Assembly (NCBI RefSeq): GCF_964204645.1
Contig: NC_134036.1
Span: forward strand, 2,108,001-2,172,000
Reading direction: 5' to 3'
Length of the DNA: 64,000 nt
From: Tubulanus polymorphus
Taxonomy: Eukaryota > Animalia > Nemertea
The translations under genes and the position numbers were made by a program. Of the stretch, positions 1,817 through 64,000 are shown piece by piece. The notes under the pieces were generated by a model. The model was not told where the DNA came from. It did no database searches and worked only from the letters and a program-made list of their open reading frames with translations. Position 1 is the stretch's first letter. The number at the start of each line of letters is the position of its first letter.

Positions 1817-4800
1817 GTGGTTTAACATCTATTGGTAAAACCTTTTTTTTCATGAAACAGAGCCCAATAAACCTCGCCTAATCTAAACCTGAACCCACGA
1901 CTAGATTTCAAAGCTAAAACGGATGAATATCGAAGACTCAATTATACTCCATAGCACGGAATAATGATTAATTGCCGCTGTAGCTAATGACAATCTTCCA
2001 TTTCTGGGAAAACAAATTCTGTCGATGCCTAATCTGACGTCACTTAAGAAGTCACGTGACGCGATTCTATCACCGATCGCTGCTTGACAACCGTTTAACA
2101 ATGATTAATACGGTTGTCAATGGATACGAAAGCGGAATTATCGCCGTCACGTGAATTGTTGTTGTTTCGCGAAATTATGAAAAATGACGTTACACAAAGT
2201 TTCATAGCGGATTGTGAAGATCGACGTTACATCGCGGCGGCAACTACGTCTATTTGTCACGGTAATTTACAAAAACCGACGCAACACGCACTAGCGCGAT
2301 CGTGCGATTGTTACAATAGTGGCGATCGTTACCGCGTAACTGGGGTTATTAATCTCGGAGTATCTGCTGATTAATGCCGGGATTAACTGACGGTCGGAAG
2401 AACGGCGTGAAAAATGGCGCCCTCACCGGAAGTTCGTTAGGTTAGGAGAGTAGGTCTGTCTAACAAGCGAGTTAACAATAGATTGTGGTTGCCCTACTTT
2501 AGAAGTGGAAAAGATATCCGTGGCTCAGTGGAAATGCTGACCGTGATTCAGGCAGAATTTCTATCCATGATCCATTCAAAATGATATCCTTGGTTCGGTC
2601 AAAATTCAGCCCATGATTCAGTGACAATTCTGCTAATGGCTCTGTTAAGATTCTGCCCATGGTCCAGAAAACTTTTCAGTACTTTACATTAGTAAAAACC
2701 TAGAAACCAGACAAAGCCATTTCGAGACTGGCTTTTAAGATCTCATTCCCAGATAGCAGCCTTTACCAGCACCCAGGCTTAGCCAGGTACAATAACGAAA
2801 TAATTCAAAATCAACCAGAACAAAAAAAAAATTCATTCCTAAAATATTCCAAGCACAAGGTCGAGTCCAAGGTCAAAGCGTCGATTTTCTGATCATCGAT
2901 AATAACCACGATATCCCGGAACCCCGTCGCCACACAACGCGGTACAACCGAAAGTTCAGCAAGTAGGCCACGCATGCGCATCGATCACTGTCCGATGGCG
3001 GATATGATACAGATCGATCATCGCGCGCGCGCGCGGTAAAATGTGTCGCCTGCCTCTCTACGAGCAGACGATGATTTATAACGTCCTATTCACAGTCGAA
3101 TCTATCTCCCGATATGTAAACAAAACCTTATCGTACTGATTAGGTAAACAAACATATTTGGTCCCTTACCCAAGTGGCTTTAACATAAATCAATTAGGAT
3201 GACCAATTTACTAATTCCCCGAGATTTCCATGTTATGATACGAAATTTCCTTTATGATTCTGCAGCATGTGAATGATAAAATTCCAATAATTCCAGGTTT
3301 TTTCAAATTCAAAGTTTGTCAAAGTTTTTTCCTCTAATTTTCTTTCTAGAATTTTGTTCTGATTTGCCGATTTTTGAAAGCTTTCTAAAGGTTTTTCGAG
3401 TAAAATTGGCGAAATTCCTTTTTTTACTTGACTTTTACTTTTTCTTATTCAGAGAATTTGCAATATACAGATTAAGAACAGCAGCAGTTAGTCTGGCTGT
3501 GTTATAAAAGGAAATAAATGTGGCCATTTTTAACCATTCCGGGACAAACTGAGCACAAAAATCATCTTTTCTGTAAGATATCAGAATAACACTGACGACT
3601 TATGACTGATGACCGATGACGAAGATTGATGAGACTTACAGGACACCTAATCTCAACCGTTGAAAAATATCGAGTACTTACGTAAAGTTTATTGGCCAAA
3701 TCAACCAACCAATCAACGAGGCGAACGCGGTGACATTTATAGTCACGTGACACGCGTCGACGTCGTTAAAACTGAAGTGTTGTCGTAACCGAGTAAAGTG
3801 TTAAGGGCGATGTGGAGCCCATTAGAGACGGCGCACTCGAGAGAACCCTGATGGGAATCAGTTTTACACCTATCGACACCCGGAGTGGTTCTTTACTGGG
3901 CGAAACTTCTTTTTTTTCGTGCGTTGAAAAGTCTCGCGTTACCGAGCGACGGCGCGTGCGCGCGATCTTCAACCGTTTCGATTATTGTATAGTCGTGTCG
4001 GATTATTACCGTCGGTTGCCTGGTAACCAGGTGCGTGAAATGGCGATAAAAATACCGTAAATGCGAGATATATACGGATATACAGGAGTAAAAATTATCC
4101 CAAAGCTCCGGCGTGACCTTCAGCTGCGGTGACAGTAAATTACGGCAAAGTGGCTCCAATATAGAAATGGTTTGCACCGACACCTTACCTGTAGAACGTT
4201 GGGCTTGTAACATACCGTATATGGGTAATGCAAAGTGCTTACATGAGCAAGCAAGAATTAGAATATTCTCGACAGAAACATAAGAAAATCTGGACAAAAA
4301 ACCCGACTGTCCACACATTGAGATAATGGGAAATTAGGGAATTAAGGAAAAGATTTTTTAAAATTGTTTAAAAACTTACCTACACGGATAAGACATCAGA
4401 AAGTACCGGAAAAGATAAAAACAGAATTGCATTTGTTAGAATTAAGTTAGAATAGAAACGATTACATTAAGAAAGGCAATCGAGCAAGGGGAGTGGGTGA
4501 GGGTAAGGGCGTTTATGGGGAAAGGTCGTAAAAGTTAAGGAACCAACATCTCCATTTGCCAGGTCAGTTTCCTGCAGCGCGATAAAAAACACAGTTAAAA
4601 CAGACGACCTCTAAAAGTTGGACAGCAGACGAATTAATGAAACGTTGTCATCACTTCATCAACGAAATGCGCGCGCGTTCAGTTCGTCTCAGTTCAAATC
4701 TCAGCGCTACCGGCACGAGGCTAGTTACAAACGGTCGTACCTGTTGAATCGTACGACGGTGCGTAACCACGGCAACCGCGTGCCGGAGCGTTCTCTGATT

Positions 4801-5425
4801 ATTATTGTGTCGAGGGTTGTTTTTTTGCGTTGTTGTCATTTTCTCTGGAAGCGACTTTGCGAAGATTCGAGTTTCATGTTTCGCAATTTGAACAGTCACG
4901 AAAGTTTGTCGTAGCGCAGACGATGCCACGCAGGGAGAGGTGGCAGACGACTGCTTACGGGGTTAATTTCACCCAGTCCTCACCAAAATAATTTACTCAC
5001 TAAAGAAATTGTTACTTTATGTTTTCAATGACGGAAGTACTTCAGAGTGAAACGTTGCGATCATTAGCTTTTTTCAAATGCCGTTGAACGAGCCCATTTC
5101 ATTTTAGTGCCACCAGATGGCGTCACCCGTTAATTTACCTTTTTCTTTTTTTTCAAATTAGATAAAACCTACACATTTTTTACCACACAATTGTTGATTT
5201 CAACAAAGCATTTGAACCCGGTTTGTAGGCAGGAAGGGTAACTTTACGAAAGAAATAACTGACTAACATATTACAGGAAACTTTTAAAATGTGGTTAAAA
5301 AACTCGTCGAAATCGTGCGTAAAAGTTTAATGGTAGCACTTCACAATATTGCGCAGCAGACCGAGGCTGTATTTCGCCTTACAGCCACCAGATGGCATCA
5401 CCGGCCGGTGTATCCTACTACTTAC

Positions 5426-6579: not shown

Positions 6580-9500
6580 TTGTCGTCCTAATGCACACAC
6601 TCACTCACGTGTACGTGCGCACGGGAAGTAGGTCCTCAATTAGTGCTTGTATTTATCCGCGTTAAAATAGTGACGCGGTTCGAGCACTTTGCGGTTTCCT
6701 GTCAATAATCAAGAGTTCACTTGTTGCCATGGAAAATATGAATCCTTTTAACAACTCGGAATATTCCGCCGTTCTTCGCGGGGGAGATAGCTCGGTGTAC
6801 GGGAGGAACCTAGATCGCGTTTTCTATTCTTTCCGTTAGCTCGTGTCGAACGTCGTAGATCGTATGTCGCACGACTATCACCCGTGAAATTGTTTATCGA
6901 ATGATTGAATATCGTAAGTCGTAAATCTTGGTGAATATCGTTTAATGATATGTCGTGAATCGTATGTTAAGAAATCGAATGTCTATTAAAAAATTCTGAT
7001 CATGAGTTGAGGTCACTTTTCGGTACATTATACAACATTCCAGCTAGTTTTAATCGTAGCTTAATTTGCATAACTCTGATCGAAGGCGCCACCTAACGGG
7101 GTTATTTGCGTCACTTTTCCCGACGTATTACGTCATTGTTTGATGAGATCTAATTTGAATCGCATTCAGCGGACGTAGATCCGTCGTACGTGTCGAGTGT
7201 TTGCGTACTACGTCATTTTCACAAGTCGCTACCAACATGGCCGCCTATTGAAGCGAGAAAAACTTTCATCTTAAAAAATTGTAGGAAAAAGCGAAAATGA
7301 TACATTTTTCGAGCAGGTGACTTTTAGAATGTGGTTTCCGTCCTTAGAGTAATGAAAAGCCGATAATTCTAACTAACTAAACGCGTTACGAATATGTGAC
7401 TTAAAAAAAAATTGCCAAGTCAAACTTTTTTTCTCACGTATAAATGAAAATGTGCCCAAAAATATAATGATTCAATTGACTCACCTATTGCACTCATCAA
7501 ACCTACAATCAAGCGAAGACCTTAACTTTTTATTTTCCGGAATTTTACTCATCAATTCAAAACTTATAACGCAAAAAGTAAAGGTAACGTTCTTTTGTGA
7601 AAAAATCACCGAAAATGTCAGTAATAAAGTTTCCTTTGATTCAGGAAACTTTTCGCAACCATTATTTGCCCCCTCGAGGCGCACAAACAAATTGACCTGA
7701 TCTACAAATTGATTTCATTAAAAAACACCCAAAATGACATTTCGCCCGGAAGCTGGAAGCAAACGAACGCTCTTACGAATAATCAAAAGGGAGAACGACC
7801 TTGATGCAAATCAGCGCCTCTAGCTTACATCACTTCGTAACCGTAAAGTTAATGAGGTATACAGAGGTGGAGAAAGCGTCAAGTTTTCATTGAAACACCT
7901 TCAATCCTCTGAGGCTCACAACGCCTGATATCCCGCATAAAGGCGAGTCCGGTGGACGGGAACTGGTTCCGTCTACCCTCGCCCACCTGACCGGCTGTTG
8001 GCTCTTAAAGGAGCCATACTCTGGGAACTAATCAAAGGCAGGTGAAGGCTAAGGTGATGTTACTTATACGTTTAACAAGTTCCCTAGAGTAGTCTGGGCT
8101 TCAAAGGTTAAATCCCAATGGGAGCCATCTAATTATATTCAACTAATTAATATAGATAACTCTCGCATTTCGTTCGAAAAAGGAATGACTTCTATGGCGA
8201 CCTCTATCGGTGACAACTATGACGTCAGTGTGCTTAGTAAAATCCCAGAACGATGTCATTTGGCACGATGATGCTCTTTGGGAAACGGGAAGGTTAGCCG
8301 TACCCTCACAAATAGGCTGAACATGCCTTATGGCATAGACGAAGTGAACCGTCTGCTCTATGCCTATAAGGACACTTGAAATACTGGTCACTTGTTTGAA
8401 CCCAGGCGAGATTGACCGCACTCTATGAGGAAATACTGGTCACTTGTTTGAGCTGATTACCGAACAAGCCGTTTGTTTATCAGATTTACTGCATTAACGT
8501 CGTAGCCAAGAGAAACGACGTCTTAACCATAACTAACAATGACAGACGAGTCATTAACGTAAGCGTAACGTAAAAACCTCTCGACGCGTTTATCAACGTC
8601 TCGATTACTACGTCATTAAGTTATATCGTTTCGCGATCTGATATTTTTACGTTAACGTCTGACCGTCAACGTCAGTTACGCAACGTTAACGTCTCGCACG
8701 CGTATAAATTTACGTTAACGCGATATTGAACGTCGTCCCCAGCGTAGGTCGGATTACGGTAACGGACGTCGTCAGGTGTTTTGGTTTTTTCGCAGCGCTG
8801 TCATCGGCGGCGAGTTTGTTTTCTAGTCTCGAGGGATGCGTGCGCATCACCGCCCGATATCGGAGATCCGATTGCGGATGTCGTCTGCCTAATCCGGGGG
8901 CAATACGTCACAGCTGTCGTCGATGGATTTCAGACAGAAACGGAAACTGGAAATGGAATGCTTCGAGGAAATAAAAAAAAATAATCGGGATAATGATCAA
9001 TTCCACAATATTTTCTATTTTGCTGGTGACGCGACGATTTTCGAATATTTTTGGCGAATGGGTGACATTCAAGGAATTGTAGCAATTTGCTGCAGTTTGT
9101 CCTATGAGAAAAATCAATTTAAAAACAGAACCTCCTTCATGAGTTACGGCCATTAATCCTACAAGTAATAGGGAATAATGAGCAATCAAAAAGTTTATTT
9201 TTTTGACAGTTCGCTTTGCTTAATTCACTGGAAAGGTCTCAATATACTGACGACTTCGGCTAGATGTAAAGTTATTGTAGCGACAATATCATAGACCCTA
9301 CAGCACCCTATAGTATGAGGTGTTTCAGGAGCTGTTATATTGCATTATAAGCCTCACTCGAACTGAAGGTGTATAATACTGCAGCGTGCACGTGACTCGG
9401 AATTGAAAACGCTAATAATAGCTACGAAAGATCGTGACTGGAATCCGGAACCACGTGACCGGAATCTGTCGGCTATGTCGTTATTATCGTTTATTAAAAT

Positions 9501-11224
9501 GGGAGATAAGTTCAACAAGTTCTAGTTTTTTTTTTTTGTAGGAAAGGTATTATTTCCGGGGATGATTAATATGTAACGCAAGGAACCTGCAGCCTTTCAG
9601 AATTCCATGATTTGTAGCGAGGAGTGTGGACGATCATTTTTAGAATATTTAAGTCGATGCAGGTGCATCTTTAAGGAGAATCGGAATTAGTTTTAATTTC
9701 GACGTTTAAACTATGAATATAAGATTAGAAATTGGATTGAGAATGAAGCATCAGATATCTTGGAAGATGAGGGGGTTCAGGGGGTTCATTACAAAGACGG
9801 ATCCGGGAAAACAAGAAGACCAGTTTGACCTTTTGACTTTCTAAGTCTTAAGAAAAAGGGCCACCTTAATGGGAAGGCTAGGGTTCGGACCCCATAGACC
9901 ACCCAACACTCATCCACCCCCTGCAATAAATATGCTGTAAAAGCCCGTTTGCAAATTATTAACCAGCAGACGGCTTGGCAAGTCTAACAACATTTCATTC
10001 GTCGGTTATAAATATAGTTTTGTTTCAGCCTCGTCTGCGCAGTGTAATGCTATATAACCTAAAAGTGTTGTTATCGATTTCAAATCGATCAATAAAAAAC
10101 AGTTGATACCATAAGCAGACGACATCGAGAACAAATCGTTTTTTAACGACCAGTTTACGTGCATATATATAGAGATATAGTAATATTTATATGTCAAAGT
10201 TTTCGCACGGCATAAAGGCAGCCAGTTACAGTAGGCAAGGTGGCTTAGATTAGAAGACCAACTTCGGCTTGCAAGTCTCCGGTTTAAAGGTTATGTTTAC
10301 GGTGTAACACTTGACTGTTATCAATTCTTGTATGGCTTCAATTGAGTTAAATTTACATTCAGTCAAATTTAACCTTTACCACAATACGAGTTTCTACAAT
10401 TACAAAGCATTTCATCTCTGACTCCTCCGCCAGTCCTTTGTGTCCCATCCCTTACAACATCTCCATCTCTCTCTCCTGGCTCTCCCTCTCTACTCTCCCC
10501 TCTCCTGGCTCTCCCTCTCTACTCTCTCAGCACCCCTCTCTACTAGTCCCTCGCTCCACACTCTCTCCTTACCACTCTTACGCACCGACATTCGCTCAGG
10601 CCGTTGTGTCTGGTGGAGAGGATCAGTGGAAGCAACATAAATTCACTCAAACACTGTGATGTTAAATTCAACAGAGCAGCAGCCATCCATTTTTTTATTG
10701 CCAACTCACTACTAACCTACATTGTTTATACCAGGGGGCAGCACTAGCTGGACCAGCAAAATTCTCTCCTTATCAGTGTCCCATTCCATCCCTTTCAACA
10801 TCTCTATCATTTCTGGTCCCTCTCCTGGTTCTCCCTCTCTTCTGGTCGTTTTCCCTCACCATTTCCTAGCCCCTCTCTCTCTCCACTCTCTCTCTCAGTC
10901 CCCCTCTCCCTCTCTCCACTCTTACGACCCACTCACGTTCGTTAATTCCGTTTTTAAGAACGCGCAAATATAGAACGCAAATATTTATACGAATCGGTAA
11001 TCGATAACTAGTTGGATAGAGAGCAATGTTGTTTATTCTGCGCTGTCGCCTCCACACACACACACCGGGTGTGTCACTCTCGTTTCGCAGTGGTACATTA
11101 TACCCTAAACCTCAAAAACACCGCTACTATATGGCCATGCTTGAAGAAATACTACCGATTCCAAAAATCATGGCCATTAATGCGGGTGGCCCTGTGTTTA
11201 ACCAGTTTTTATGAAGACCCTTAG

Positions 11225-12625: not shown

Positions 12626-15600
12626 GGGAACTCCACCAGCTTCGAAGACTTTGAAAAGCCACCTTCCCTTAAGTTTACATTCAACCAAAGCTGATGTCGC
12701 GTACAACGACTCAACACTTTCAGAAATCCCATTTCCACTCAAGTACTCGTAGCTTTCTAACTTCCTCGCTTATACAAGAGATTTCGCTGGTTTTTGAAAT
12801 GAGATTTGTACATCCCCGCAACCTTTATGGCTACACTAGGCCAATTAGGTTTTATCAGCCAACCGATACATCTACGTACAGCCAGGGAAGTGTGATGAGA
12901 CTTCCCTGGTACAGCATAGAAAGATATAAAAATGCCACCGGGCATATTTCTTTGTCGACTATCGCCAAAGTGGCTTCAATTTTTTTCCATATCGTCGTTT
13001 GGCAAGAAGGTAGATTGCATTACAGTTTATGTTGGCACCGGCGAAGCACACGACACTGCATTAATAGCGAATGGTGCAGTTTAACGAATCGTCCATTAAG
13101 ACGAGTTTATTTGTTTTAAAAATGTTGGCGCTGTGTGTAAAGTGTGGGTTAATTAGCGGAGAAAGCAAGATCGAAGAAGTGGCTTTTAATGACATCGTTT
13201 CCAGAATGTTTGCCAGCATCGCCTTGTTGATACCCCAGCTAGCGAACAAGATGGCCACATTGTTCAATAAAGTATAGATTATGATAACAAAGAAATAGTC
13301 TAATAACAAGCCTTTATAATAAACCAATAGATGACAAAGACCAAATAATAACTCAAGTCTCGCTGAAGCTTAATTTACTGATGTCCACAGTGAATGGGAC
13401 GTAAGGCTGGGATTAAGTCAGGGTTATGCCTGGGCTAAGGTTAAACAAGGTCTTTTTGACAAACCAATTGATGGCAGAGATGAACCCAAAGAAATCCGCG
13501 TACTGGAGTCGCTACCATGCACGAATAGGTCATGCGGCGTTCTACACCGACAAGTTCATCATTGTGCCTGATTTAAAATTCACCTCCAATAAACCTCAGG
13601 ACTGATTGAATACGAGCAGCGCGAGTGACACGTGACACGAGACGTGAAGCAGACGACTTCAAACGGTTCACGCATCACGACAGACGACAATTCAATTTCG
13701 TGCCCATAAAATCCTAACAAAGTCAACAACCTCAATCGCGCCCCAAACTACTGATTCCTCGGGAGAACGACCAGACATCTAAAGAGGAACCATCAACCTA
13801 CTTCACGATTCTCAAAGGACGTTCAAAGTCCTTGGGTTCAAGGTCCTTGGGTTTCGTTACTTACTACTTGATAAAGATCAACTATAATTTCTGTAAAGAA
13901 GGATTTAGTCCAAGGTGCATTCAGTTTAGTCGTTATAAGTTGGTTTGTTTTCTTCTAGCCGGCTTTGTCCAAGTTTTTTTTTTTCATCTTGGCGACATAT
14001 AACCACCAACCAACTTTATGACCTAACAAGGACAACCAAGCTGATTCCGTTTTGTCACCCCTACTTCCTTAGCAAGATTTTCCAAGCTCGACGATTAGAG
14101 GCGTATTAAGCATAATCACCGTTAGCTGATATGTTCTTGGCTCTATTTAAGGAACAGCAGGACCTTCCCCTGTCATCAATTCCTATGGAGACACGAGCTA
14201 CAAACACCCCTCATTGGTGGTATATTATTTTTTTCCAAATCTCAATTTCTCTCTTGAATGTCCCAATATCGTTTAAACTCTATCAATCGTAAGAGCTATT
14301 TAAGAGCTAGCAGTTCATCAAGTACTGTTTACCAATCAAATTATAAACATGACTTCTTCTCCCAGCAGGTAGTAAATAGAAATATGTTTTTTTTACTGAT
14401 TAACTCCGCGCGACGTGAGGTCCTTAACAGTTATACTAATGTCATTCATTGACGACGCAGCGACGACATCGTCATTGACGGCGGTGGTTTCATTACCAGT
14501 AACTTACAATCGATAATTTATTGAATCGTTTAATTAAACCAGTAGATTACATATGCATACACCTTGGCAGACGACAAGCTGTGATGGTCGCATGAGTTTT
14601 TTCGATACACTATTCCCGCTATTCAAACTCCCGATCTTGCTCGAAGGAGAAAAACATGCCCACCATCTGTAATAGGTCCCTTTATGGCATTCAGCATAAA
14701 GGCTACGACAGAACACTATATCGCATTGCAATATCACCCAGATGTTCCTAAATATCACTTTTAAGATATCGTCGAAATATTGAATAAACATCATCTCAAA
14801 CAAACACTTTGGTCATTACTAAGTGTACTGTTTAATCTAGGAATAATTCATATTGTTACGGCAGTTTATACCGTATTTGAAATTACAAAAGATGTTTGTA
14901 TCAAATCTTATTAAAGTCATAATGAGTGTTATTGTTCTGGTCAGTACGTTTTTATATTACCACTAATTTGTATCACATCTTTTGCTTATTGGGATTAAGT
15001 CGAAACGTCACGACATTCATACTAGATCATTATGGTTTAACACGACACAATAATCATCACATAAAGGAAGGGTCCTTAATGTTATACGCATTTCATCATT
15101 GACGCCAAAAGTCCAATATCGTGATGTGCATCTCTTCGTAGCGATAACCGAAGCTATTGTTGCAGCGTCATTGTTGTGTCATATATATATTGACGTTAAA
15201 ACAATGTCTACTTCATGTGACGATAATGGCAACAATAAAAACAACAACGGCAACGGCGACAACGTGGAGATTACTCGACAACGTTAAAACAACGTTAAGT
15301 ATCATCGTGCCGACGTATCGTGTTATCACGTACGTATTGTTGGCGACGGACGACGGCGATTGTTGCGTTAACGCTGTATCTAAGAGGTTCTCGTGTGACA
15401 AGAATACCATATGTTTATATACGTCTAAACGGTGGCATAGTTTTCATTCTTGGATACACATATATATAGCCACATGTTTATTGTACAATAGTCTACGGTT
15501 GCGATGCTTATGAGTCCGATCTCCCCTTCAGTTCATTTTCTACTGAATCCACACAACTTTCGCACGTTTTACGTCACGCGTCTATATCCGCTATCCACTT

Positions 15601-17565: not shown

Positions 17566-18053
17566 GCCAGACGCTTGTTTTCCTGTCGATCCCGATATTT
17601 CCGCTTTACAACTGTTTGACATGAAAAGAACGACGGCGAAGAGAACGGTCGCTTGCCGCAGTTAGAATTACGCGCTACACGACCAGCGAGCAGACGACAG
17701 ATGCTGAAATTCTCAACGACCGAAAACACGACAATACGATATATCAATATCAATATCAAACAACGCGGCATTAATTTCGATATTCTCGGTTTTTGTAGCT
17801 TTTGATTTGCGGCAATATCAAACCAATGTAATAAAGCGCGGTCTTAATAATAACAGTTTTCATTATGATATATCAATATCAAACTGCACAATTACGATAT
17901 TCCATTTTCCCATTCGATATTTACTAAGGAAAAAACAACGACGATATTGATGAATATTTATGATGAGGCTATCTTTTTAAGATTTTCGAATTTTCGAGTT
18001 GTGCCAGATTAGTGTCTGTTAAAAACTGTATCAGGTCGTCAAACCCGCCAACA

Positions 18054-18125: not shown

Positions 18126-18719
18126 GGTCATTGCTTTAAAGAAAAATTCCGCCTCCATGAAAATATTTTTATCAAAAAGTCCGAGGACATCGTATCATCC
18201 CCGTAATATCTCAAGTCCGAATGATATTTGATATTCGAGCTTTTGATATCATCATGTACCATAAGATAGTTGACCTAAGGTATTTCAAATCTGAGACAAA
18301 AGCCTCTTAGATGTCCTCTTCCGTCCGAAGGGCAAACCGACTTTCACCAGACGAGTTCGAAAAATAAAAATCGAAATTTCTTTTCAAAACGAAGGATGTC
18401 TGTCTGCTGCAACCAGCGCAACCACAGCAGCAGCAACAGAAGCAGCATCACAGCCAGCATCCAAGATCAGTAGATACGGGGATGAATTATCGCTGGACCA
18501 ATGAATCATCATCAAACGTTTTCGAACACGGAAATGCTTTTTCAATCTCGTCTGCGCGTAGTTCATTTAAAGATCGTCTGCTTCAAGGAACTGGTCTTTA
18601 GATCTACAGTCAGACCAGAACCGATAAATAACTACCTAGCTACCTGTCTCTGTGATCTGTGAAAAAAACTACACTGTCTTATCTATCGACTCTGTAAAAT
18701 CGATAGCCACGGGTTCGTC

Positions 18720-20820: not shown

Positions 20821-21218
20821 CAGCTTCACTTGCCACAATCGGGTTGCCGGAGTCAGAAGAAACCGAATCATTGAATAGACGCTTCACTTGACACAGAAGG
20901 TTTCCCGACGATTGAATGAGAGTTAATTAAGTGAAGTGAGATCTCGATAAATAGGATTAATTCGTCTGCGATTGAGAGATTTACCTGTCATACGGATTAA
21001 CAGGGAGAGCGCTCCACAATCTCTCGGGAGGTCGTGACTGAATGTGACCTTCCTCACGAGTAATACGTAAATACGACGCCGACAAGTCGCGCACATTTAT
21101 ATCATCCAGATACCGGATTCACACAAGGTTTCATCTAATCATCTCCACATTATATTAAAATGTCTCAGTTTTGTATATCTTTATGTCATGTTGTAATTCA
21201 TTGTGGAAATAAATCATT

Positions 21219-44400: not shown

Positions 44401-45197
44401 CAGTAACAAAATTCATAAGCCACAGGTTATAAGTCACAAGCAGCTGAAATAACTAAACTTAGCTCGCAATAGTAGTTTCAAAATAACTAGGTCCTTACGG
44501 GGACTATGGTTTGACAGTGGATTAAGAATAAAACAGGGATTTAGAAAAGATTAAGCTCGGGTAAACCCTCGTAAAAATGTGGGCAACGCCCACTGGGGCC
44601 AAATTCAAAACGGCCGCCAAAATATGACCTACAGCCCATATTTGGTAAGAGTATCTAAAAGGAAAATGTGCATTGGTAACAATTACAAACTTCTTGAGCC
44701 GACGATTGAAGCAAGTTCATGCTTTCAAAGCTTTGTTAGCAAAATGGAAAACTACTTGAGCTGGGACTCTAACTTTTAGAACCAATTTACCGAGCAGAGA
44801 GCTTCTTCAAACTGGACCGACTGATCATTTTCAGAACCGAAACGATTCTTTCATTTTGCATTATTTCATTCTGATAACACAACATTTGCACCTCTGTGAA
44901 AAGTCGACGATAAGTCGATGCGTGATAACCTTATAAAGAACACATCACAGCAGATACCGTTACACTGAGGTTGGGCGTGTGTGTGTTTATTCAAACACGA
45001 TCTAGCGAATTGATATAACACCCGCCCCGGGGAACCCTTTCTTCCATCTCCATCTCTCGCTCTATGGCAGACGACATTATTCTAGCCTATGTCTATTTAT
45101 AATAATAATAATAATACTATTTTATATCCGGAGGAATCGATTTTTTCATTTCGTTTAACGTTCGACGCTTCGAGCTCTGAGCAGAAAAAAAAGTGAA

Positions 45198-51590: not shown

Positions 51591-53159
51591 GAGAACGACT
51601 CGTGCAAACAGCAAAACTCTCAGGGTTACTGTAAGATGATTTATACCAGCAAGTCGCCGTTTCGGGCACACGCGGAGGCAACAAATCTCGGTTCTCATTT
51701 TATGAAATCCCGGCGGAGGTCAGAATCGATGAGGTTTTTATATAAACAATAATACCCGCCGACGAGCGAACGCTTGACGACACTTTTACGACTATATCAT
51801 CCCGAATAGATTTTACGACAAATGACCGTTTTGTTTTACGGCTTATTTCGTAAACGCGGATAATGGTGTTTTATTGGACGATATTGGATATCTGTCAGAT
51901 GGATAGAGAAGGTGGTCTGGAAGTCCAATCTCTCGATCGAGATCTATGTGGAAACGTTTCCACAATGTGTCCTAAGTCACAGATGGGTCGGACGAAATCA
52001 TAATATCATGAGTCTGGGTCTACAATATTATCTCAATTGGTCCCAATGACGTTCGGAAGTTCAAGCTCTGGACCATGGTCCATCTGAAACCCTGTACAAA
52101 CCATGTCCAAAGTCACAGCTGTAGAAATGGATGCAACAAAATCAAAATATCATGAATCTCAGACAGGGGGGTCTGGGAGTCCAAGCCATGGCCCAGATCC
52201 ATCTGGAACCGTGTCCAAAGTCACCACAATTGGGACAAAAGTCTCAACTCGGGCAAAAGTGAGAATTGTGGAAATCGTAGAGCTAAAAAAAAGGGTGTAA
52301 TTGAGTTTATGTGCCCATAGTGACGAGTCTTGAATCGAGTGCAGAGCCATAACTTCAGAACAGAGTCCAGAATGCCATGCGTGGAGTCACAAGTGTAGAT
52401 CTAACGAAACGAGTCCAAAGTGATAACCGTGAAACTTAATCCAAAATGTGACATCAATCATTTCATTTTCTGGGAATCCAAATGCCGTGTTTGAAACCTG
52501 AGTCCGAAGTCATAAACTTGAAACAGGATCCTGAATGTGACATCTTTCATTTGGTTTTCCGCGAAACCCGTTACCGGGGTGACTGCACTAATAGGACAAC
52601 AATCAACGAATCGACGTCACAAATCACAAACGACGTCCGCGCTGGAGTAAATTCACTCTCGGATTTACGACCATGGAATTTACTACTCCGGTAGTAATTT
52701 TACGACGCGTTAATATTGGATGTCGTAAAATCTGCTATCTAACGACGGCCGTAAAACGGTCGGAGGATGCGGAAAGTTACGGGAACGGCGAGAGAAACGG
52801 ACAAGTACCCCCGGTATCATCGACTCATAAATCAATAACCAGAGCAGACGATAGGTTCATAATGGAAGATCCTATTGCATTGTTGTCCAAATAACAGAAT
52901 AAACAGAATGAACACTAGTAGAATAAGAAGTACTTTCAAACGGAGCTCCTTTTTATAATTGATAATATGCAAATACGTTCGTGTAACATTTTTTATGAAT
53001 TCTTCTTTGGCACAAAAACTGAAAAAAGTTGTCTACTGTTTTTTTAATGTAAAATTACGATATTGGAATTGGGTCCTCATTGAAATTTCTATCCGACTAA
53101 TTTGAGATATCTGAGACGACCCGAGGAAAATGTGGTCTACAATATTATTGAACAACCTC

Positions 53160-53400: not shown

Positions 53401-56400
53401 TTCTTATTCTTTTACGAAATAAAAGTCAAACAAATGGACAATACAAATCATATTAAACTCCCAATATCCAGTGCATCTAGGCACCCGATTGTTGGGAATC
53501 GTTGCTACCCAACGTATCTAACAACAAAATGCTCTTAACGACATCGCGGAACGGATCGGAACATTTTACCGGGTCCTCGCATTATCGATCGTGTATTCTC
53601 AGTAGGACAGTGTCGCCAGGGGGTAAAAACAAAACATGTCATGTCATGTCGCAAAACTAGAAATAATATCAGACCTCATAAAATCTGGTTTTTAGGTTTC
53701 TTCCTGGACAGGGTGTGTCGTTGGAGTAGGTGGAATGGCACGGCTTGTGGTAAATAGGGATGTATGGGTTACCGTGAGAACATGATGGGAGAATTTGAAA
53801 AAAAAAAAAAATTTAACTTACCTGTTTTTGCGTGTGCGACAAGTTTAAACAGCACCGGAAAAGAAAAAAAAGGAGAAAAACAAATTAGTTTCGAAATCGA
53901 AAATTTTAAAGGAATTAATTTTTTACATGTGTCAAACAATTTTTTGGTTGGGTTTTCGAATGCGTTGACTTAAAATGGACCAGTTTCATTGAACCTTTAT
54001 GATAACAAAATTGAGTTAGCCACAAAGGTAAAAGTTTATACCAGTCTAAAAACTGGGTACAAGATATTTCACATTCTGCCACCAGAAACGGTCTCTTTAA
54101 GGCCAAAAAAAAATTGATACCTTGTTTCTCCGCTCTGCTGAGCTTAAATGTTGACCCGGCCGGCCGCCTATCTACCCTATACATTACTTTTTTTAAAATC
54201 GTGATCAATTTCACCATAACTGACCCGGCCGCTATAGAAATGAACTGTTTATAAATTTTATCATATTTTACAAAAATGACCCGGCCGCTGCGGAGAAACA
54301 AGGTATCATTTTTGTTTAGCCTAAAAATTGAAAAAAAACCCTTGAAACACGGGTGATGATTTACTTTCATATTCATTTGATTTGTGTGTTTTATTTGGCC
54401 ACAAAACAGTCCAATGAATTTTTGCAATTTTTGACCTGCCAATAAAACGTTTCGTGGCATTTCTTAGAAAGACAAGTCCAGAAAGGTAAAAGGCTTCTTC
54501 TGTGAGAGAGCAATGAGATAAACGGAGGGAAAGTGTGATGTTTTATCGTCTGTTGAACACCCCGTAAATTATTCATCTACACTAAAGTGCGCGTGTCTTC
54601 CGTCCATTAACATCCTACAGCGGATAATAGGTGACGGTAACGGGCGCCATTTTACCGATTGTAAACAGACAAATGACCCGTAATGACGTCTATTTACTGC
54701 CCAGTGGTCAGCGCTAGTCAAACACTGGTCAGCAATGGTCAATAAAATAACCAATAGGCAGTTCATCACGTGTAGTCATCAGGACACAGAGGACATGGCT
54801 TTTTTTTCAAAATAACTTCCGAATGTGAACATTTCCTAAGATGTGATTCGTCAAAACCCTAAAATGCACATTTCTTAAAAAGGTAAGATTTACTCCCAAA
54901 TATGGACATTCTGAAAATAGATTTACTTCCATATATGGAAATTTCGAAATCAAAATGGAATTCGTCAAAACCTCCAAAATATCTTAAGTCCGAAATAGAT
55001 ATGACCGTGGCCTGATAGCGGCCATGTTAGAAAAAGTAATTCTTACAAAACCTGTTTCCTAAACATCTTGAATGCAGCGGATATATTCACAACTTATAAC
55101 TGATGTCGAATATCTAATGACTGATATCTGAGACTTATAACTAATGACGTGATTTTTTCTTAAACAGTTATCTCTTACGACTTGGTGAACGAATAAATGA
55201 CCCGCCGGCGTTCTGTCCCAGGGGACAATTTTACTAAATCGACAACGTCGCTCGCACCGTCGTTAATCACGACGTTACGTCATTTACGTCAACCGACGTA
55301 AGGAAACCATTTATTTCATACGTTATATAAACCGTATTACATACGTTAACGTTAGAATCCTAATCAAACGTTCAACAATCGCTACGGTTATTTTTCCCCG
55401 AACGTTAACGCTGCCGACGGGGTAAGAATATTCCGAACGGGTGACGTCATCGGCGGAAACGCCGACGGTACTTCCGGCGAAGGTAACGTACGCGTTGGGC
55501 TTATCTTTTACGTTAAATTTCCGGCGTTACCCGTTAGTCGCCCGTCGTCTGTTGGCCGCCGTTGCCGGGAGATATTTTCTAAGTCGCAGACGAGCAGGTA
55601 CCCGCAGACGACTGTAAAACGAGAACCTTTAAGGCGGTGCATGAAACGACGGGATTTCTGTATTTTTATCTCATCTCACCCAGGGTCGGTTCGATATTTC
55701 AAAGAGGAAGTTTTCCTTTCATTATTTCATCCAGTTGCGACTGCGAAGGTTTTTTCTAGCAAAGATTGAACAGCACTTCACAATCACGCGACTATAATTT
55801 AGATTGTTCGAATAAGTAACCGTTTGAAATTGGATTTATTCAACTTTGTTTCAGAAACCCGGCGAAATCTTTGTTTCTAGAAATCTTATCTAAATACAGC
55901 AAAAAGATTAACTTTCATTCTTTTCATCTCGGTATCATTTTCAGATATTTTTTTTCCGATGTAAATTCTTTAATGCAGTTTTCAAAGAGTTAAATGAACT
56001 TTCTTATTTTATTTTTTGTTTAAAAGTCGCTAGCAATTGGATTTTAATCTCAGCGAAAAACTGTGAAAGTTTCCTTTTGATTTTAACCAAATCCAATACG
56101 GTTCGAGGCTACATTTGTTTAAAACGGAAGCTACGACGACGTTGCAGGCATTTTTTTCAAACAAAGTCTAGAAGAAATTTTCTTTTGAAAGCGAGTTATT
56201 TCTTAGTCTTTCATCATAACAAACAGACATTAAACCATTTTTTTTATCCAGGCCCCGAGCGAACGAACTTCCCTTAAACGCAGTCGAAATGGCCTTTAGC
56301 ACGTGAACGGAAGAAGATAGGATATCTTTGTAGCTGCTGCTGCTGTTGTTGTTGCTGCTGCCGCTGCTACTGCTGCTGGTGCTGCTTCTATTGTTGCTGC

Positions 56401-58387
56401 TGCTGCTGCTTTGTTGATATGAATAATGTACGGGGATGATTTATTTGACGTTGCGGTGCGTTACATCATTTTAGTTGACGGTTATTCGGCTAATGCGAGC
56501 GCATTAATATGAAATATTCGTGCGCAGCGGTCGCGTCGCTAATCCGGAATTATTTGTCAACAATGTCGCCTAATGCGACAATTAACGTCAAAACAAAAGA
56601 CAAACTGTCAGACGAAACGCTGAGATGGGGAGATACAGAGAGTTATCGAGATGGCATTTTGAGAATACAACTGTACTTTGTATTTCAATAAGAGATGGAG
56701 AGGGAGAGAGTGGGGAGGGAGAGGGGAGAGGAGGAAGGGAGGGAGAGGGAAGTGAGTGGGGAAGGAAGGGGGATGGAGGTAGGGGGAAGATTACGGGGCT
56801 TTTTGTCGCTTACACAAAGATGATGTCAGTCGAAAGTTGATAGAAAGTGGGAGAGGGAGTGGGGGAGAGAGGGAGACGGAGAGTGGGAGAGAAAGAGTCA
56901 AAGGAGTTGATTCTTCTTTGACTTTTCAGACGATAAAATGTCGACGCAAAAGCGGAAATTACAGTTCTTCCGCACCAAAAAACCGACGGACGAACTTGAT
57001 AATAAAACTACAGCAGAGTTCTTTCTCAAGAGTCTGAATCTGATAAACGGATTAAAAGTTTCGTTTTTCTCTATCAAACTAAAATCATCGAAATCGTTCA
57101 AAAAAGCGAGACGCGATTGAACACGACGAAACTCGTCTGCGCTTCACCTCATCTCTCCGCTATCTGTCTATCTACCCCTCTAACTCACCGACAGATACCA
57201 CACAAGTGTTTGAACGCGATCTCGAGGTCTGACGAACCCGACTTGTTCGTTTACGGCGATTTAACCCAAACAAGCGGCTAAAACTTTACGCCGTCGTTAA
57301 TACCAGGGTAACGACGTTTGATTGATGGCGCGGATAAACCTGCGTCATCAGATACCGCTAAAGTTTATAAGCGTTAACGTGAAGAAAATATGCCGCTTAC
57401 GTTCTAACGGTATCTGATCGTTAAATTCGACGTTATTTTTTCGCGTCCGCAATCTTTACGCAATTAATCGTATGTTTGAGGCGGATGGCGTAACGTTGGA
57501 TTAGACGTAAATCGACGTTTACGTAAAAAAAAGTTACATCCGCGAAGACGTGTTTACACCGCCGACGACGTAACGTCTCAATAACAAACCGCTGATAACG
57601 TTCGTTACGTTACGTTTACGTGAATTTATCATTCGCGGTTCAATTCATTCCGCATCATACGCCGTCGCGAGTTTGAATTTGACGTTAGTTGACGTTGACG
57701 GCGGAAGAAATCCGTATAAACTGATGATGTGTTTTTTTCGAAGGTGTCAATTTGAGAGAATATGGCAAGAACTCGCAGACAAAGGAACTGACGAAACAAA
57801 TCGTCGAAGGACAAAGATGTAGCCATTGTTTCATTCAATAATTCAGATTGTTGTACCTAATCCTGATAGAAGTTGTCTGTCTGTTGGGGGTTATACAGCT
57901 CAACGGTGCAGTGATTCTCATCCATCAAACCTCAAAACACTAATTACGCTCAGACTTATCATATTGACGTTCATTGAGACCCTCACTACAGGTGTCTATA
58001 GGTAATGGCTTTTAGTAGCTAGCGCGTCCTCCTGTAGTAGCCACATCGTGAATGGGGCTGTGACAGAAATCATTGTCCTCCGGTAACACATCAACCGAGC
58101 AGCTCCACGATCCCCACGATCATGAGGAGAAATCGTTTACCTGTCGACTGCCTGGTTGAATTTACGCGTTGGAATTGGTCAACAATTCAAACAGTTGACA
58201 CCCGTCTGTTGGCTCCAGGACACGGAGAGTGTCTGATACGGTTAGTTCCCAGGGGCAGACACCGTAACCGAGGTAATTACGATAACGACCCACAGGGGAC
58301 GCTGCAGTGTTCCAGGTGAGTAGGTTTTAAATGGACGGTTGGTGGCAATTGACAAAACGCGCATTAATTTTGAAGTAGGTGGTGCAG

Positions 58388-58750: not shown

Positions 58751-60311
58751 GAAGGTAAAGATGTTCGAGAAACTAGAATTCCATTACAACAAATCACAGC
58801 ATCGCTTCTCGTCATCCTATACCTGCCAACAGTCGTTGTCATGCCGATAATTGTTGATAATAACGTTATTAACGTCGTTGTCATCGTCGTTTACTCCGCA
58901 ACAATGCAACAGAAACGCAATAATACGGTTAATTATTGCTAGGTGATTTTTCGTTTGTCTACAGTTCCAATTAGCATCGTTATCGTCTGCCTCGGGATCG
59001 CGGTTGCTAATGGAGACAGAAAAACGAAACGAGAAGGACGGCGCGAAAAAAAATCAAGGTCAAGAATTTTGTTTTTCAAACATTTGGACTTGATTGGCAT
59101 TCCGGTAATCACAACTTACTGCATTGCTACAGTTGCATTCAATGATGTTTACATCTTTTAAAAGCTTTTGAGCAAATGCGTCCAGAGCCTTTTTGTTGGG
59201 TAGATTTTACAGCATTGTAATGTTTTTAACAACGGAGCCGTTAATGATTTAACGGAATTGTCGAAATGTTGTCAGCAATTTTCTAACTGTTCATTTATCA
59301 GTTTTTGAGGACAAAGGACCTAAAAATTAGTGAGTTCCATTTTCGAAACGCTTTAAGAAAGTTACAACACAATGGTCGACTTGTTTTCAGCAATCTTTTA
59401 ACCGTTCATTTATTGGTTTTTTACTAACTTTTCTCAAAACAATTCCGGAGCGTCGGTTAAAAAAACAGGGTCAATCCAAATTCAGAGAATATTGGCAAAA
59501 ACCAAGGAAGGAAGTAACGATTTCATCAGGAGAAGCATAAACTATTGGGTGCACAGAACTCGAAGGAAATATGAGTTCCATTTCTGTTACATTTTGAGAA
59601 CGTCACAAAACATTTGAGATCGTGACGTTTATCTTTTATTTTAGAATATGGGCGATTCATCAGGACAAGCATGCTTTACAGCATCTGTTATCCTTTATCT
59701 TATCGTATCTCACCGTTATCTTATCGTAAAGAGGAGAGGAGAAAGAAAAACAAACTTTCATGAAAAAAGTTAAATCGAACACGAACGCGAATTAAATCTA
59801 AATCTAAATCTAATACCGACAGCAGACGGCGGAGAACCTGTCACGTGTCACGCGCATTAACGTCTAGGTACAAATTAACGGATGATGGTTGCTGTGTTGC
59901 AGTTAGCAGCGACGTGGTGCACGCTCGGTTGGAGATTAAGTTCGTCTGCTGGTACACGCCGGTACGGTGAATAATGAGCCGTTCGCGTGACGCAACTGGT
60001 ATCGTCAGCCTCGGTCGTAATAATTACCGCCGTGTACCGTTAATAATTGGGATAATGATTTAAAATGTGCTTTGCACGCGGCCGCGGTGACAGCAGCGAC
60101 GTGCGTAGACTTATCACCCTAAACTATCGGAATCTCTACAGACCGGTAAACAAACATGTAACGCTATTTTGAGATGGTGCTGAAAATCGGCGAGATGTGA
60201 AGATAAAGAGATGAAACGTGTTCGATCGGTCGTGACTCGCGACAAGATCGGGTCAAGTTAAGAATGAGTCGACCCAAGACCAAGTCGAGCAGATAACAGA
60301 TGAAGTCAAGC

Positions 60312-60482: not shown

Positions 60483-61751
60483 GATATCAAACGGATATTG
60501 GCTTTGGTCTAATCAGAGATAAGGATAGCCAGGTGCCGGGGATTCACGGATACTTCTGATATTCTACATTAACTTTTATTTGTATCAGTTATCAATAAAT
60601 TAGGCACATAACACAGCATCTAGTAGTTCCCTATATTTCTTGATAAATACTCATAAGTATTCGATATATCAAGAACGACAACGATTTTTAAACGTTCCCA
60701 GGAGCAGACGACTTGTCTCACAATCTCTGAAACTCAGAGGCGCTTTAAAGCCGGTTACGCAATATTAAAACTGCAGCATTAAATTTCCCGGAGGAGCAAA
60801 ATTTACAAGACTTCGCGAAATTTCGTTACAGCGCGAAAAAAATTACTTTCTAGATTTCTTAATTTTCTGCGTCTATTTCTCAACGGGACCGTATATTGCC
60901 GACCGACATGCGCCGACAAATTGTATTCTCGTGTTGTCTCGTTAACGACGAGATTTAAGACGGGATCGCTAATTCCCGCGCTGCCCGTTTACCGACAGCG
61001 AACACATGCGACACGTGTGAAAGGGTCATAAATTCGAGAAATAGACCCCGAAATCGAATCCGGGTCGACGGAAAATGGTTAAGTAACTTTCGCTGTTCGG
61101 AAAATGGACGGAAATAATAAAAAAACATGTTCTTTTTTCTAATTGCAACCCAACGATTTTTAACTGATTTACAATTTCCGGTACAAAATAACGATTTGCT
61201 GAAATTGGGACCAATTGCACATAGTCATGACTTAGAGATTTGAGACCAGTCTATGTCCAACACAACTAATTTTTTGTAAGCAGCCATTTTCTAAAGTGAT
61301 TCGCAACACTTCAAAAGGGAGGTTTGATGGTCAATTCAATAGGGAGGGTTCATGGAGGCAGCCATTTTTTTCTTGGTAGTCACAACATCACCACATCAAT
61401 TTGATAATGTCATTGGGACTTGTTAATGTAGGCAGCCATTTGACAAAAGTTGTCTGATAAAAATAGCTCAGAATATCATAGAATAATTCTATAAAATATC
61501 ATATGAAAATGAACTATGATTTCACAAAGCAATATCGACGTTTCGACTCTCGATTTACGTCTTGTCCGTTCGTCGTTTCGTCCGACGTAATAATATATAA
61601 ATTCCCGATTTTCTATCGCCGTCGCCGCCGGTACCGCAGACGAAGATTAATTCAGTTTTAGCAATCGTCGGAAATGTACCGAGTCATCGAGAATGAGACG
61701 ATGAATTCGGACCCCGCGGGCACCTGCCCGTTTATATAATGTCGCTATGCA

Positions 61752-61966: not shown

Positions 61967-62073
61967 GGCGCAGTTTCACAAAAGGTATTAAGACCTAAAT
62001 TGATTTAAGATAAACTGAATTAATGAAGAAATTAAATCGATTTAACATTAAATCCTATTTGTGAAACTGGGCC
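61967..62073. mobile_element. Harbinger-type MITE family B (107 bp)
   Basis: TIRs GGCGCAGTTTCACAAA / TTTGTGAAACTGGGCC with CTG...CTG duplication. The AT-rich core is shared, inverted, with 11225-11338. Confidence 0.82.
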
Positions 62074-64000
62074 CTGGAGTCAAAACTGGAAGGCCTATCT
62101 TATGAGAGAAGCTCCTATATTTACTTAGGTGATCGAGGCGTTTGCTAAAAGTTACGGAAACAGCTTTGAGTCAAGTCAAAACTGGTAGCTCGATATAGCT
62201 CAGGACAGAAATGACTCCAACGCGTGTAAAGCCAGTTAGAGCTTCTCTGATTGGCTAAATTTGTTTTGTTGGTATCACAATACCTCAGATGCAAAGAAAA
62301 CTACCAGGCGAAATTATCTCAGGCGAAATGAGAGCCAACCATTTGCACTGTCAGATACAGCTCAAGGCCTGGAAACGAATGTTGTAAGACTAAAGTAGAT
62401 GTTACAAAAGTAGTCAAAGGTTAAGAATCTCTTCGGGCGAATGAATCATATTTTCTTCATAAGCACGTTACGTTTCACTTTTCCGATTTAACTCTTAAAA
62501 CAGGATTAATTCTCACTGTTGAACCGAGGCGGACAGTCGAGATTTAGAGAATGTTGCCATCGGCGACAGACTTTTCACTTTAATAAAAGGAAATGAGAGA
62601 ATAACTCTTACTGTTGAATCGGACTAGGATTGTCACCACGAGCAACTGATAATAAACCATAATGTTGCTGCGTGTTGTTTCCGAAGACAGAAAAAAAAAC
62701 CGGCAGCGGTCGGGTTGAATTCCACATCAGCAGACGATCCCCGGGGTCCGTACCCTGGATGCCAGACACAAATACCGGAAATGTCAGCGAAAACCGGAAA
62801 GCAAGAAAACAAATTGAGAACAGTGGGAAAGATTAGAACCCTGGAAGTAAAACCGGATCGCTATGTTTCTGAAGTTAGTTAATCCCGGAGTAATATAACC
62901 CGCTACTGCTGGATAATCGTCACCGTTACTTATTCACGAATGTTGCTAGAAATAAAATCCCCAGGGAGACGAGTTATCTGATATATCCGATACCGTTAAA
63001 ACGATATCTCATTGTTTATAACGATGTAAAGTTGATATTTCTGTATAGTGAATTATTCAATATGTGGTCGACTATCAATACTAGCCGTCTCTTAGCTGTC
63101 CATTATCGGCAACCATTATTAGGCTGGTTAGTAGTCCACTTGCTCTGTCCACACGAGTCCCGGGTTCGAATCTCAATCAAGCGGTCATTTTTTTTTCAAT
63201 TTAAGGATTTTATTTTGTTTAAATAAAGGATAAATTCAAAATATTATTGCGCTTATTGTTATTCTATTCACGTCGTTTTTGCTACGAGACGAAGTAATGC
63301 AACAATACGCTCGACACACGCCGCTGCTACAGCAACCAACGGTCTCCTTAAGCAACAGTCAATAAATAAATTCAAACCTAACGACTTCCCATATTTCCCG
63401 TCATCCATCATTGTGGCTTTGTTTAAAATGGCGGTTTCTAATCTACGGTTCGCTGGGAAGTTTTTGTCGGAACAGGATTCGATTTGAATAGAATTGTTTA
63501 CAATCGGAGAGACTGTACGGAGATTAAAACGGAATCGGGTTGAATGAGGTAGAACCCAAACAGCGGAAGGCAATCGGTTTATTTTACCTGAGCAGATTTT
63601 TTTGAAAAAAAAATGTTCAAGAGTTCAAGCGAGATCACTGGTGGGATTTATACAACCAATACCATCATCGATTTAAAGGAAGTAGGCTATTTTGAAAAAT
63701 GCAAACATTGTCTATCTGATGACGTGTGATATTTATATAACACCTGAACTGCCGAAGCAAGTCAGTTATTCAAACTGGCGAAACATCCAAAAGTTCCACC
63801 AAAATCGTTGATGGCATTTACAGAAATAGCTTCGTACTAATCGTGTGGCAATTTGTACTCGCACAGAATTTTTGGCCATCTCTCCCTCTCTCTCCTTCCC
63901 TCATCTCTCACTCTTCTCATCAATGTAAGCACATGACGGAGTGAATGCCAGTAAATAAACAGCCGAGATCACGTGATGAAGTTTGAAAAGTTCACGCGTT

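Follow-up and report, generated by a model that had tools for sequence, protein, structure and literature searches.

The stretch of DNA considered here, 64,000 nucleotides of the palaeonemertean ribbon worm Tubulanus polymorphus (C12:2,108,001-2,172,000 in an assembly with 12 chromosome-size contigs, C1 to C12; referred to below as the window), raises the question why a single exact word of eight letters, GCAGACGA or on the other strand TCGTCTGC, should recur many times in DNA that is otherwise unrelated from copy to copy. In the original prediction this octamer was taken for a genome-wide landmark that is read by a sequence-specific protein. The feature is real and sharply defined. However, it is regional rather than genome-wide.

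Within the window 37 exact copies were counted, 22 on the plus strand and 15 on the minus strand. Every one of the 36 positions that had been listed earlier proved to be an exact copy, and a 37th was added at 20962(-). The earlier figure of about one copy expected from base composition was likewise confirmed, as 1.22 copies were expected from dinucleotide shuffles (the largest count in which was 5) and 1.91 from an order-3 Markov model. The excess is about 20- to 30-fold over chance (Poisson P <1e-33), and the octamer ranks top among the over-represented dispersed 8-mers of the window. In the high-order Markov check that had been proposed with the original prediction, the excess was formally lost only at orders 5 and 6, at which 14 and 33 octamers were expected. 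The window has 70 CAGACG and 44 GCAGACG words, and in each case 37 of them belong to the octamer itself; this test is circular, because the 6- and 7-letter sub-words are mostly copies of the motif.

The octamer is also clearly set off from its nearest neighbours. Each of its 24 one-letter variants has 0-7 copies in the window, compared with 37 for the exact word. Many one-mismatch copies had been reported and these do exist (47 in all), but the 18 interior variants are at or below expectation (25 observed, 31.7 expected) and it is only at the edges that an approximately twofold enrichment was seen, the 6 edge variants totalling 22 against 10.2 expected with two enriched positions. The other samples of C12 gave the same picture for the interior variants (54 observed, 55 expected).

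Counted over the genome (267.8 Mb), the octamer has 9,275 copies, compared with 5,723 and 4,169 for matched control words. These independent controls matched the octamer in composition and had a single CpG; the reversed word was unusable since GCAGACG is mirror-symmetric. The excess over the whole genome is thus roughly 4,300 copies or about 1.9-fold, and the 30-fold figure is local, which changes the experiments that make sense. The notion of a genome-wide landmark could not be upheld, for the excess is confined to mostly distal blocks. The first 4.1 Mb of C1 hold 100 copies, which equals background. On C12, 56 copies were present in 184 kb between 0.25 and 3.0 Mb (the window included), whereas the samples beyond 3.25 Mb (3.25-10 Mb, 70 kb in total) contained none. 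The 10-kb samples from the 0.25-3.0 Mb region held 19 copies in 120 kb and were patchy, with 0-9 copies per sample. A domain-specific alternative word was not found: none of the other C12 samples has a dispersed 8-mer peculiar to it.

Blocks of enrichment were located at 0.25-3.0 of the 11.5 Mb of C12, at 0.2-3.7 of the 16.5 Mb of C9, at 0.4-2.8 and 10.1-14.2 of the 14.3 Mb of C10 and at 8.2-16.1 of the 16.7 Mb of C8, while the large chromosomes have smaller clusters near their ends. Outside 200 kb of samples and 15 small loci this map rests on listings of close pairs of copies, which are very rare by chance. Direct pairs of the octamer itself (the A form, after its final letter) with a gap of at most 14 bp number 51 in the genome: 12 on C10 (in its two blocks), 8 each on C12 (1.50-2.39 Mb), C9 (7 of them at 0.2-3.4 Mb) and C8 (7 at 10.5-15.4 Mb), 13 on C2-C7 together, 2 on C11 and none on C1. 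With the inverted pairs included there are 71 loci, the density of which is 4.8 times higher on the small chromosomes; 55 of the 71 lie within 4 Mb of a chromosome end, where 37% would be expected. In this sparse pair-based map most chromosomes have one dominant end, C10 has two blocks and C11 has nearly none. Of the 3-kb loci around inverted pairs, those inside the blocks (on C3, C9 and C10) contained 7 extra sites in 21 kb and those elsewhere none in 24 kb. Direct pairs are seldom spaced very closely (6 of the 51 at 8-12 bp), as would be expected if two bound proteins cannot overlap, and zero-gap tandem copies occur only twice in the whole genome.

The true core of the word is the 7-mer GCAGACG, and its final A is a local flavour. 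The core has 24,038 copies in the genome against about 15,400 expected from composition, an excess of about 8,600. In the window and the 2.25-Mb sample of C12 the eighth base is A in 46 of 55 cores, compared with 10 of 23 in the other in-domain C12 samples (P=0.0007). On C9 and C10 it is G or C, and in a dense block near the left end of the largest chromosome (C1:196,289-202,111; 11 cores in 5.8 kb) no core is followed by A. Pairs of non-A cores with a gap of at most 30 bp (477 entries) are found near the ends of the large chromosomes and are densest in the blocks of C9 and C10. When all flavours are taken together, a distance of exactly 15 bp is seen in 68 pairs and one of exactly 18 bp in 49, where about 1 is expected; the loci of these pairs are concentrated on C9 (21, all at 0.2-3.7 Mb) and C10 (24, at 0.39-2.8 and 10.5-13.1 Mb), with a single one on C12. 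More than 10 different mini-arrays with units of 13-90 bp, several of 15-18 bp, share nothing except the core. Many short arrays with units of 15 or 18 bp, which differ except for the GCAGACG in each of them, occur in C9 0.5-3.7 Mb and in C10 0.39-1.2 and 10.5-13.1 Mb, examples being C9:1038752-1038831 and C10:1199248-1199327.

The spacing of the pairs depends on the flavour. Pairs of the G and C flavours prefer 15 and 18 bp (8, 29, 13, 3 and 22 loci at 14 to 18 bp, respectively; P=6e-6), whereas among A-form pairs spacings by multiples of three are not favoured (13 of 36). The G- and C-flavour pairs are often preceded by GA or CA, in which case one open frame reads Glu/Gln-Gln-Thr. The three-letter register of the C9 and C10 arrays could reflect coding repeats, or else the three-base step of a reader with multiple zinc fingers.

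Alignment of 70 oriented in-domain sites gave the form g-V-GCAGACGA-Y, in which position -2 is rich in G, position -1 is A more often than C or G with T avoided, and position +9 is C or T. No further conserved columns beyond chance were detected within 80 bp on either side of these 70 sites. Local alignments of 60-bp flanks from 93 sites had a mean score of 7.4, compared with 7.1 for random controls, and the sole pair of sites with related flanks lies outside the domains. This agrees with the earlier statement that the flanks are unrelated and that the copies are therefore not transposon copies. Tandem and interspersed repeats, which make up 15.9% of the window, contain none of the 37 copies where 5.9 would be expected (P=0.0017). 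The absence of exact copies had been noted before for the homogeneous satellites, and none was found inside the single clear coding exon, 5418-6236(-), as had also been noted. At the divergent and convergent pairs extended inverted termini were not found.

The sites were said to lie mostly in or at the edge of CpG-rich segments, but the association is weak: 6.2 CpG per 100 bp near the sites as against 4.8, which is about 0.5 standard deviation (SD) above the window mean. Their spacing in the window is near Poisson except for a few close direct pairs (27, 26 and 18 bp), the spacers and flanks of which are unrelated. The suggestion that the word serves chromatin opening, methylation protection or nucleosome positioning finds no support in this weak CpG link and Poisson-like spacing. 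Orientation along the window shows 13 runs where 18.8 are expected, which is marginal (P=0.04). The use of both strands (22:15) fits reading at the level of DNA. A switch of strand skew at the sites was not seen, and an apparent A/T asymmetry within 100 bp of them failed a site-wise test. A strand-polarised word of the Chi or KOPS type was considered and rejected, as a strong orientation bias is absent.

Copies are also present in coding DNA. Long in-domain open reading frames (ORFs; about 16 kb) hold 3 copies where 0.3-0.5 are expected; these are in frame, encode Ala-Asp-Asp or Gln-Thr and fall in differing reading frames. They would therefore have arisen by substitutions and not by 8-bp insertions. 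One uninterrupted ORF of 2,006 codons (C12:1,253,201-1,259,218, minus strand) has two in-frame GCAGACGA copies; its product matched no Pfam family, and no homologue was found in a word-indexed protein search.

If the copies were neutral, the lack of a halo of decayed copies would imply a divergence of less than about 2%, which contrasts with the lack of flank homology and with their absence from repeats. The lack of decayed neighbours, of related flanks and of copies in young repeats is best explained by copies that arose independently and were then retained; they appear to be maintained and not to be decaying. On a rough estimate, the accumulation of such copies from some 30 one-off precursors per 64 kb, each by one specific substitution, suggests that the build-up took a long evolutionary time, and relatives of the worm should therefore share the feature.

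The word is enriched, sharply defined and regional, its flanks are unrelated, decayed copies are missing, repeats are avoided and ORFs contain it; from this we infer that the sites may be under selection and read by a putative sequence-specific DNA-binding protein, or a small family of such proteins, and so mark distal blocks of the chromosomes. We would put this at a little short of an even chance. The part of the original prediction that invoked a protein reader still fits best with a sharp word without halo that occurs in unique DNA only and between unrelated flanks; as the reader of a genome-wide mark it is not supported. According to this proposal, GCAGACG would be the recognition site on double-stranded DNA for the candidate protein or a few related proteins, extended around the window to g-V-GCAGACGA-Y, that is about 9-11 bp or the span of three or four zinc fingers. 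The different flavours would possibly be read by members of a small family with different preferences. In unique DNA, whether coding or not, point mutation would create copies one at a time, and these would then be retained by selection or by transmission bias. The outcome would be mostly distal multi-Mb blocks with about one site per 1.5-3 kb. The window sits in the densest block of C12, which is of the A flavour.

The sites most likely would act jointly and on the scale of a chromosome domain, and are unlikely to be switches of single genes. Distal regions might in this way obtain a protein coat for meiotic pairing, for attachment to the nuclear envelope or for placing recombination, or a subtelomere-type chromatin. 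Because of the distribution, the minisatellites that share the core and the analogy with the pairing centres of Caenorhabditis elegans discussed below, a use in meiotic chromosome behaviour or in subtelomere-type chromatin seems most likely. A far more specific version can be formulated as a pairing-centre-like system outside the nematodes, in which paralogous readers of the block flavours would coat one distal domain on most chromosomes and anchor it during prophase of meiosis, perhaps at the nuclear envelope, thereby organizing pairing or crossover placement. The sites of such a system would be maintained whether or not the DNA is coding. As formulated, this would be a long shot. As to PRDM9, profiles of its hallmark domains KRAB and SSXRD gave no match in the genome, but these domains are short and no positive control responded.

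Several observations weigh against reading of the sites by a protein that marks chromosome ends. The rule of one marked end is not clean, since C11 is small and shows little enrichment while C10 is marked at both ends. The domain map depends on close pairs, which scale with the square of the density, and on sparse sampling. Three distant homologue loci hold 0 copies in 35 kb, although their orthology is uncertain, the nearest cross-species homologues found being about 50% identical. Many of the copies on C9 and C10 may be codons in repetitive genes and so have a cause unlike that of the non-coding copies of the window. That the flavour of the eighth base changes from block to block sits uneasily with one protein and would suit local copying. 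In the literature no factor or described motif with the octamer sequence was found, only primer and oligonucleotide noise.

Local copying is one form of the alternative in which the word is a functionless by-product of a regional drive or repair bias, be it gene conversion that favours the word or short-range copying. A distal location with a higher density on small chromosomes is the pattern of a recombination-linked process, and the unrelated minisatellites share a core as human minisatellites do; the flavours fit copying better than one reader protein. However, a generic bias such as GC-biased conversion cannot pick a single 7-8-mer whose interior neighbours are at background, and drive therefore still needs a sequence-specific agent. 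Moreover, the in-frame copies in ORFs oppose the insertion of short patches, the repeats are empty of copies though fast copying should strike them too, and C11 is pair-poor in spite of its small size. We consider such a by-product unlikely, though by no means negligible.

The copies might also be ordinary transcription-factor sites, in homotypic clusters for a Smad-like or other factor that serves natriuretic-peptide-receptor-type and other clustered genes. The densest stretch of C12 (pairs at 2.09-2.26 Mb) does overlap five ANF-receptor paralogues at 2.11-2.43 Mb, and the window contains other regulatory-looking words, namely CGTTAACG, the cAMP response element (CRE), the E-box and CTCF-like words. 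The word includes CAGAC, the Smad-binding element that had been pointed out in it, and so shares CAGAC/GTCTG with Smad-binding and BMP-response elements. The likeness does not go beyond this 5-mer, as the partner box GNCGYC at 5 bp is present in 0 of 70 sites, the palindrome GTCTAGAC is not formed, and the density and exactness are far higher. The near-Poisson spread over introns, intergenic DNA and exons (about 1 per 1.5 kb, without islands) and a 20- to 30-fold excess with near-zero tolerance of interior variants are far from the usual statistics of factor sites. In addition, the blocks on C8, C9 and C10 are devoid of ANF-receptor paralogues and their genes are diverse, for instance an MFS transporter and an ankyrin-SOCS protein. 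Factor sites of this kind are accordingly a doubtful explanation.

A signal in coding sequence or RNA would be a third possibility. The word might encode part of a repeated peptide (such as Glu/Gln-Gln-Thr or Ser-Arg-Arg), act as promoter of small RNAs or as the downstream promoter element (DPE) AGACG, or belong to a structured RNA. The 15- and 18-bp spacing of the G- and C-flavour pairs on C9, C10 and the large chromosomes speaks for it, and part of the core excess may be coding. In the window, however, open frames around the sites do not exceed those of matched controls in length (p=0.12), which gives no indication of hidden exons; the A-form spacings lack the three-letter register and the ORF copies use different frames. 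A core-promoter DPE arrangement is not apparent, an initiator (Inr)-like word being present in 1 of 70 sites. The arrangement of the Ruby motif, a promoter of nematode PIWI-interacting RNAs (piRNAs), was not found either: there is no fixed downstream signal (maximum single-column T of 0.41), no AT-rich spacer (downstream AT 0.577, background 0.597) and no switch of skew. The context of the sites does not form hairpins, as the minimum free energy (-17.8 compared with -15.1 in controls, about 0.4 SD) differs only as the GC content predicts and the paired-base fraction is equal. A search of the window with Rfam gave a single match, a tRNA-Ala at 35864-35936, and no other structured RNA family. 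At the sequence level the coding or RNA reading is refuted for the window and may still apply to the C9 and C10 arrays; as an account of the word it is very unlikely. That the copies, being many and on both strands, are relics of a decayed transposon, a miniature inverted-repeat transposable element (MITE), the tail of a short interspersed element (SINE) or a microsatellite, or footprints left by DNA-transposon excision, can hardly be credited and is largely refuted by flanks that align like random controls, the missing halo and the absence from detectable repeats on masking, as well as by the want of inverted termini at pairs, by only two zero-gap tandem copies genome-wide and by in-frame copies in ORFs.

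Positions of the octamer, its close pairs and other core copies in the window
Position	Strand	Feature	Match
3064..3071	+	GCAGACGA copy, intron/downstream part of receptor gene	exact
4625..4632	+	GCAGACGA copy	exact
4916..4950	+	two direct GCAGACGA copies (4916, 4943), 27 bp apart; spacer/flanks unrelated	
8349..8356	-	core copy GCAGACGG (eighth base G)	
8881..8888	-	GCAGACGA copy	exact
9966..9973	+	core copy GCAGACGG	
10031..10038	-	GCAGACGA copy	exact
10115..10122	+	GCAGACGA copy	exact
13649..13656	+	GCAGACGA copy	exact
14567..14574	+	GCAGACGA copy	exact
17690..17697	+	GCAGACGA copy	exact
18548..18581	-	two direct GCAGACGA copies (18548, 18574), 26 bp apart	
20962..20969	-	GCAGACGA copy, absent from the earlier list	exact
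21744..21751	+	GCAGACGA copy	exact
22152..22159	+	GCAGACGA copy	exact
28124..28131	-	core copy GCAGACGT	
28259..28266	-	core copy GCAGACGT	
28337..28344	-	GCAGACGA copy	exact
29078..29085	-	GCAGACGA copy	exact
29273..29280	-	GCAGACGA copy	exact
29833..29840	-	GCAGACGA copy	exact
30981..30988	+	GCAGACGA copy	exact
36202..36209	-	core copy GCAGACGG	
37197..37204	-	GCAGACGA copy	exact
37929..37936	+	GCAGACGA copy	exact
38990..38997	+	core copy GCAGACGG	
40480..40487	+	GCAGACGA copy	exact
41103..41110	+	GCAGACGA copy	exact
41857..41864	+	GCAGACGA copy	exact
45067..45074	+	GCAGACGA copy	exact
49115..49171	.	divergent pair (49115 minus, 49164 plus), spacer 41 bp	
52844..52851	+	GCAGACGA copy	exact
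55586..55611	+	two direct GCAGACGA copies (55586, 55604), 18 bp apart	
57133..57140	-	GCAGACGA copy	exact
58983..58990	-	GCAGACGA copy	exact
59822..59829	+	core copy GCAGACGG	
59942..59949	-	GCAGACGA copy	exact
60704..60711	+	GCAGACGA copy	exact
61636..61643	+	GCAGACGA copy	exact
62730..62737	+	GCAGACGA copy	exact

The coding exon of the window at 5418-6236(-) is annotated by NCBI as 'atrial natriuretic peptide receptor 3-like', a gene product of 290 amino acids, and contains a Pfam ANF_receptor domain, found in a search of this single exon. It is the first of a tandem cluster of five ANF-receptor paralogues at C12:2,113,421-2,427,102, all on the minus strand and 27-45% identical. A guanylate-cyclase exon is nearby only for this first paralogue (C12:2,071,244-2,072,025). 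A link of the octamer to the receptor guanylate cyclase or ANF-receptor family was rejected, as such genes are not limited to the blocks but occur elsewhere too. CTCF-like words (GCGCCACCTAGCGG and variants) are present at 6088, 7086 and 397, just upstream of and inside the first-exon region of the receptor, and five more lie in a 1.2-kb stretch of the 1.25-Mb sample of C12 (sample positions 3424-4577).

The palindrome CGTTAACG, often as TTTTA-CGTTAACG-Y, occurs 16 times in the window (about 0.8 expected) with unrelated flanks, at 1273, 8650-8720, 15366, 32069-34272, 55344-55410, 57372 and 60940. The copies cluster in three CpG-rich islands, and hardly any were seen in 200 kb of other C12 samples. 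They look like ordinary regulatory sites, a homotypic set for a dimeric factor in local islands, and are separate from the octamer. Among the repeats, a 47-bp satellite is found at 18729-18939 and 31176-31815 in opposite orientation, 12 kb apart, with related words at 0.75 Mb of C12, and a 109-bp satellite at 30190-30707 recurs at 3.5 and 4.0 Mb of C12. A C/T-rich array of 1.5 kb at 15934-17441 (unit lengths near 41 and 112 bp; GC skew -0.82) explains most of the raw GAGAGAGA/AGGGAGAG 8-mer counts. The contig itself opens (C12:1-170) with a degenerate CTCTC/CACCCTGT-type repeat, and no recognizable TTAGGG-type telomere array was seen there. A genome paper for T. polymorphus was not found in the literature.

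To our knowledge, no animal maintains a single exact short word by the thousand in defined chromosome domains, save in the case of the nematode pairing centres and the dosage-compensation sites of sex chromosomes. If a protein does read the word, this would be a second, independent animal case of sequence-coded identity of chromosome domains, from which one might learn what sets distal regions apart for pairing in meiosis, for recombination or for subtelomeric chromatin. If transmission bias were responsible instead, this would be a rare example among eukaryotes of a word that promotes itself, as in bacterial genomes. In either case the candidate is clean and easily assayed, with a word of 7-8 letters, about 8,600 excess cores and sharp contrasts within single chromosomes.

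Bacterial words of genome architecture (matS, read by MatP, Chi, KOPS and the DNA uptake sequences) are exact 8-13-mers, some of them limited to one macrodomain. Like the octamer they are exact and far above chance in coding and non-coding DNA, but they are prokaryotic, and Chi and KOPS are strand-polarised with replication, unlike the octamer with its 22:15 distribution. Human minisatellites of the Jeffreys type have a G-rich, degenerate short core common to otherwise unrelated distal arrays. GCAGACG resembles it as one core in many unrelated units (more than 10 array units in T. polymorphus), whereas the copies in the window are mostly solitary, none is in a tandem array and the word is exact. 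In Plasmodium falciparum the subtelomeric SPE2 arrays are bound by the ApiAP2 protein PfSIP2 (PMC2829057). As in the worm, a specific motif is found in domains at chromosome ends, and SPE2 is read by a dedicated factor tied to end chromatin. SPE2 is, however, bipartite, and its regular arrays stand upstream of a single gene family and within telomere-associated repeats, whereas most sites in T. polymorphus occur singly in unique DNA, and they extend several Mb inwards.

The pairing-centre motifs of C. elegans and their ZIM and HIM-8 proteins were reportedly described by Phillips et al. in 2009, and as far as we know the ZIM/HIM-8 family is nematode-specific. In these centres, motifs of 11-12 bp that are clustered towards one end of a chromosome recruit the zinc-finger paralogues ZIM-1/2/3 and HIM-8 (PMC11605055). 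The ribbon worm word has in common with them that a short specific word is enriched over a Mb-scale region towards a chromosome end, in dispersed copies and small clusters, on both strands and not borne by transposons, and that related variants appear to differ between chromosomes. It differs in that the nematode motifs are longer and of another sequence (e.g. TTGGTCAGTGCA), and in that C10 of T. polymorphus has two blocks, C11 almost none and the large chromosomes only small clusters. The T. polymorphus word is closest in kind to the nematode pairing-centre motifs, but is not assignable as a member of the nematode family.

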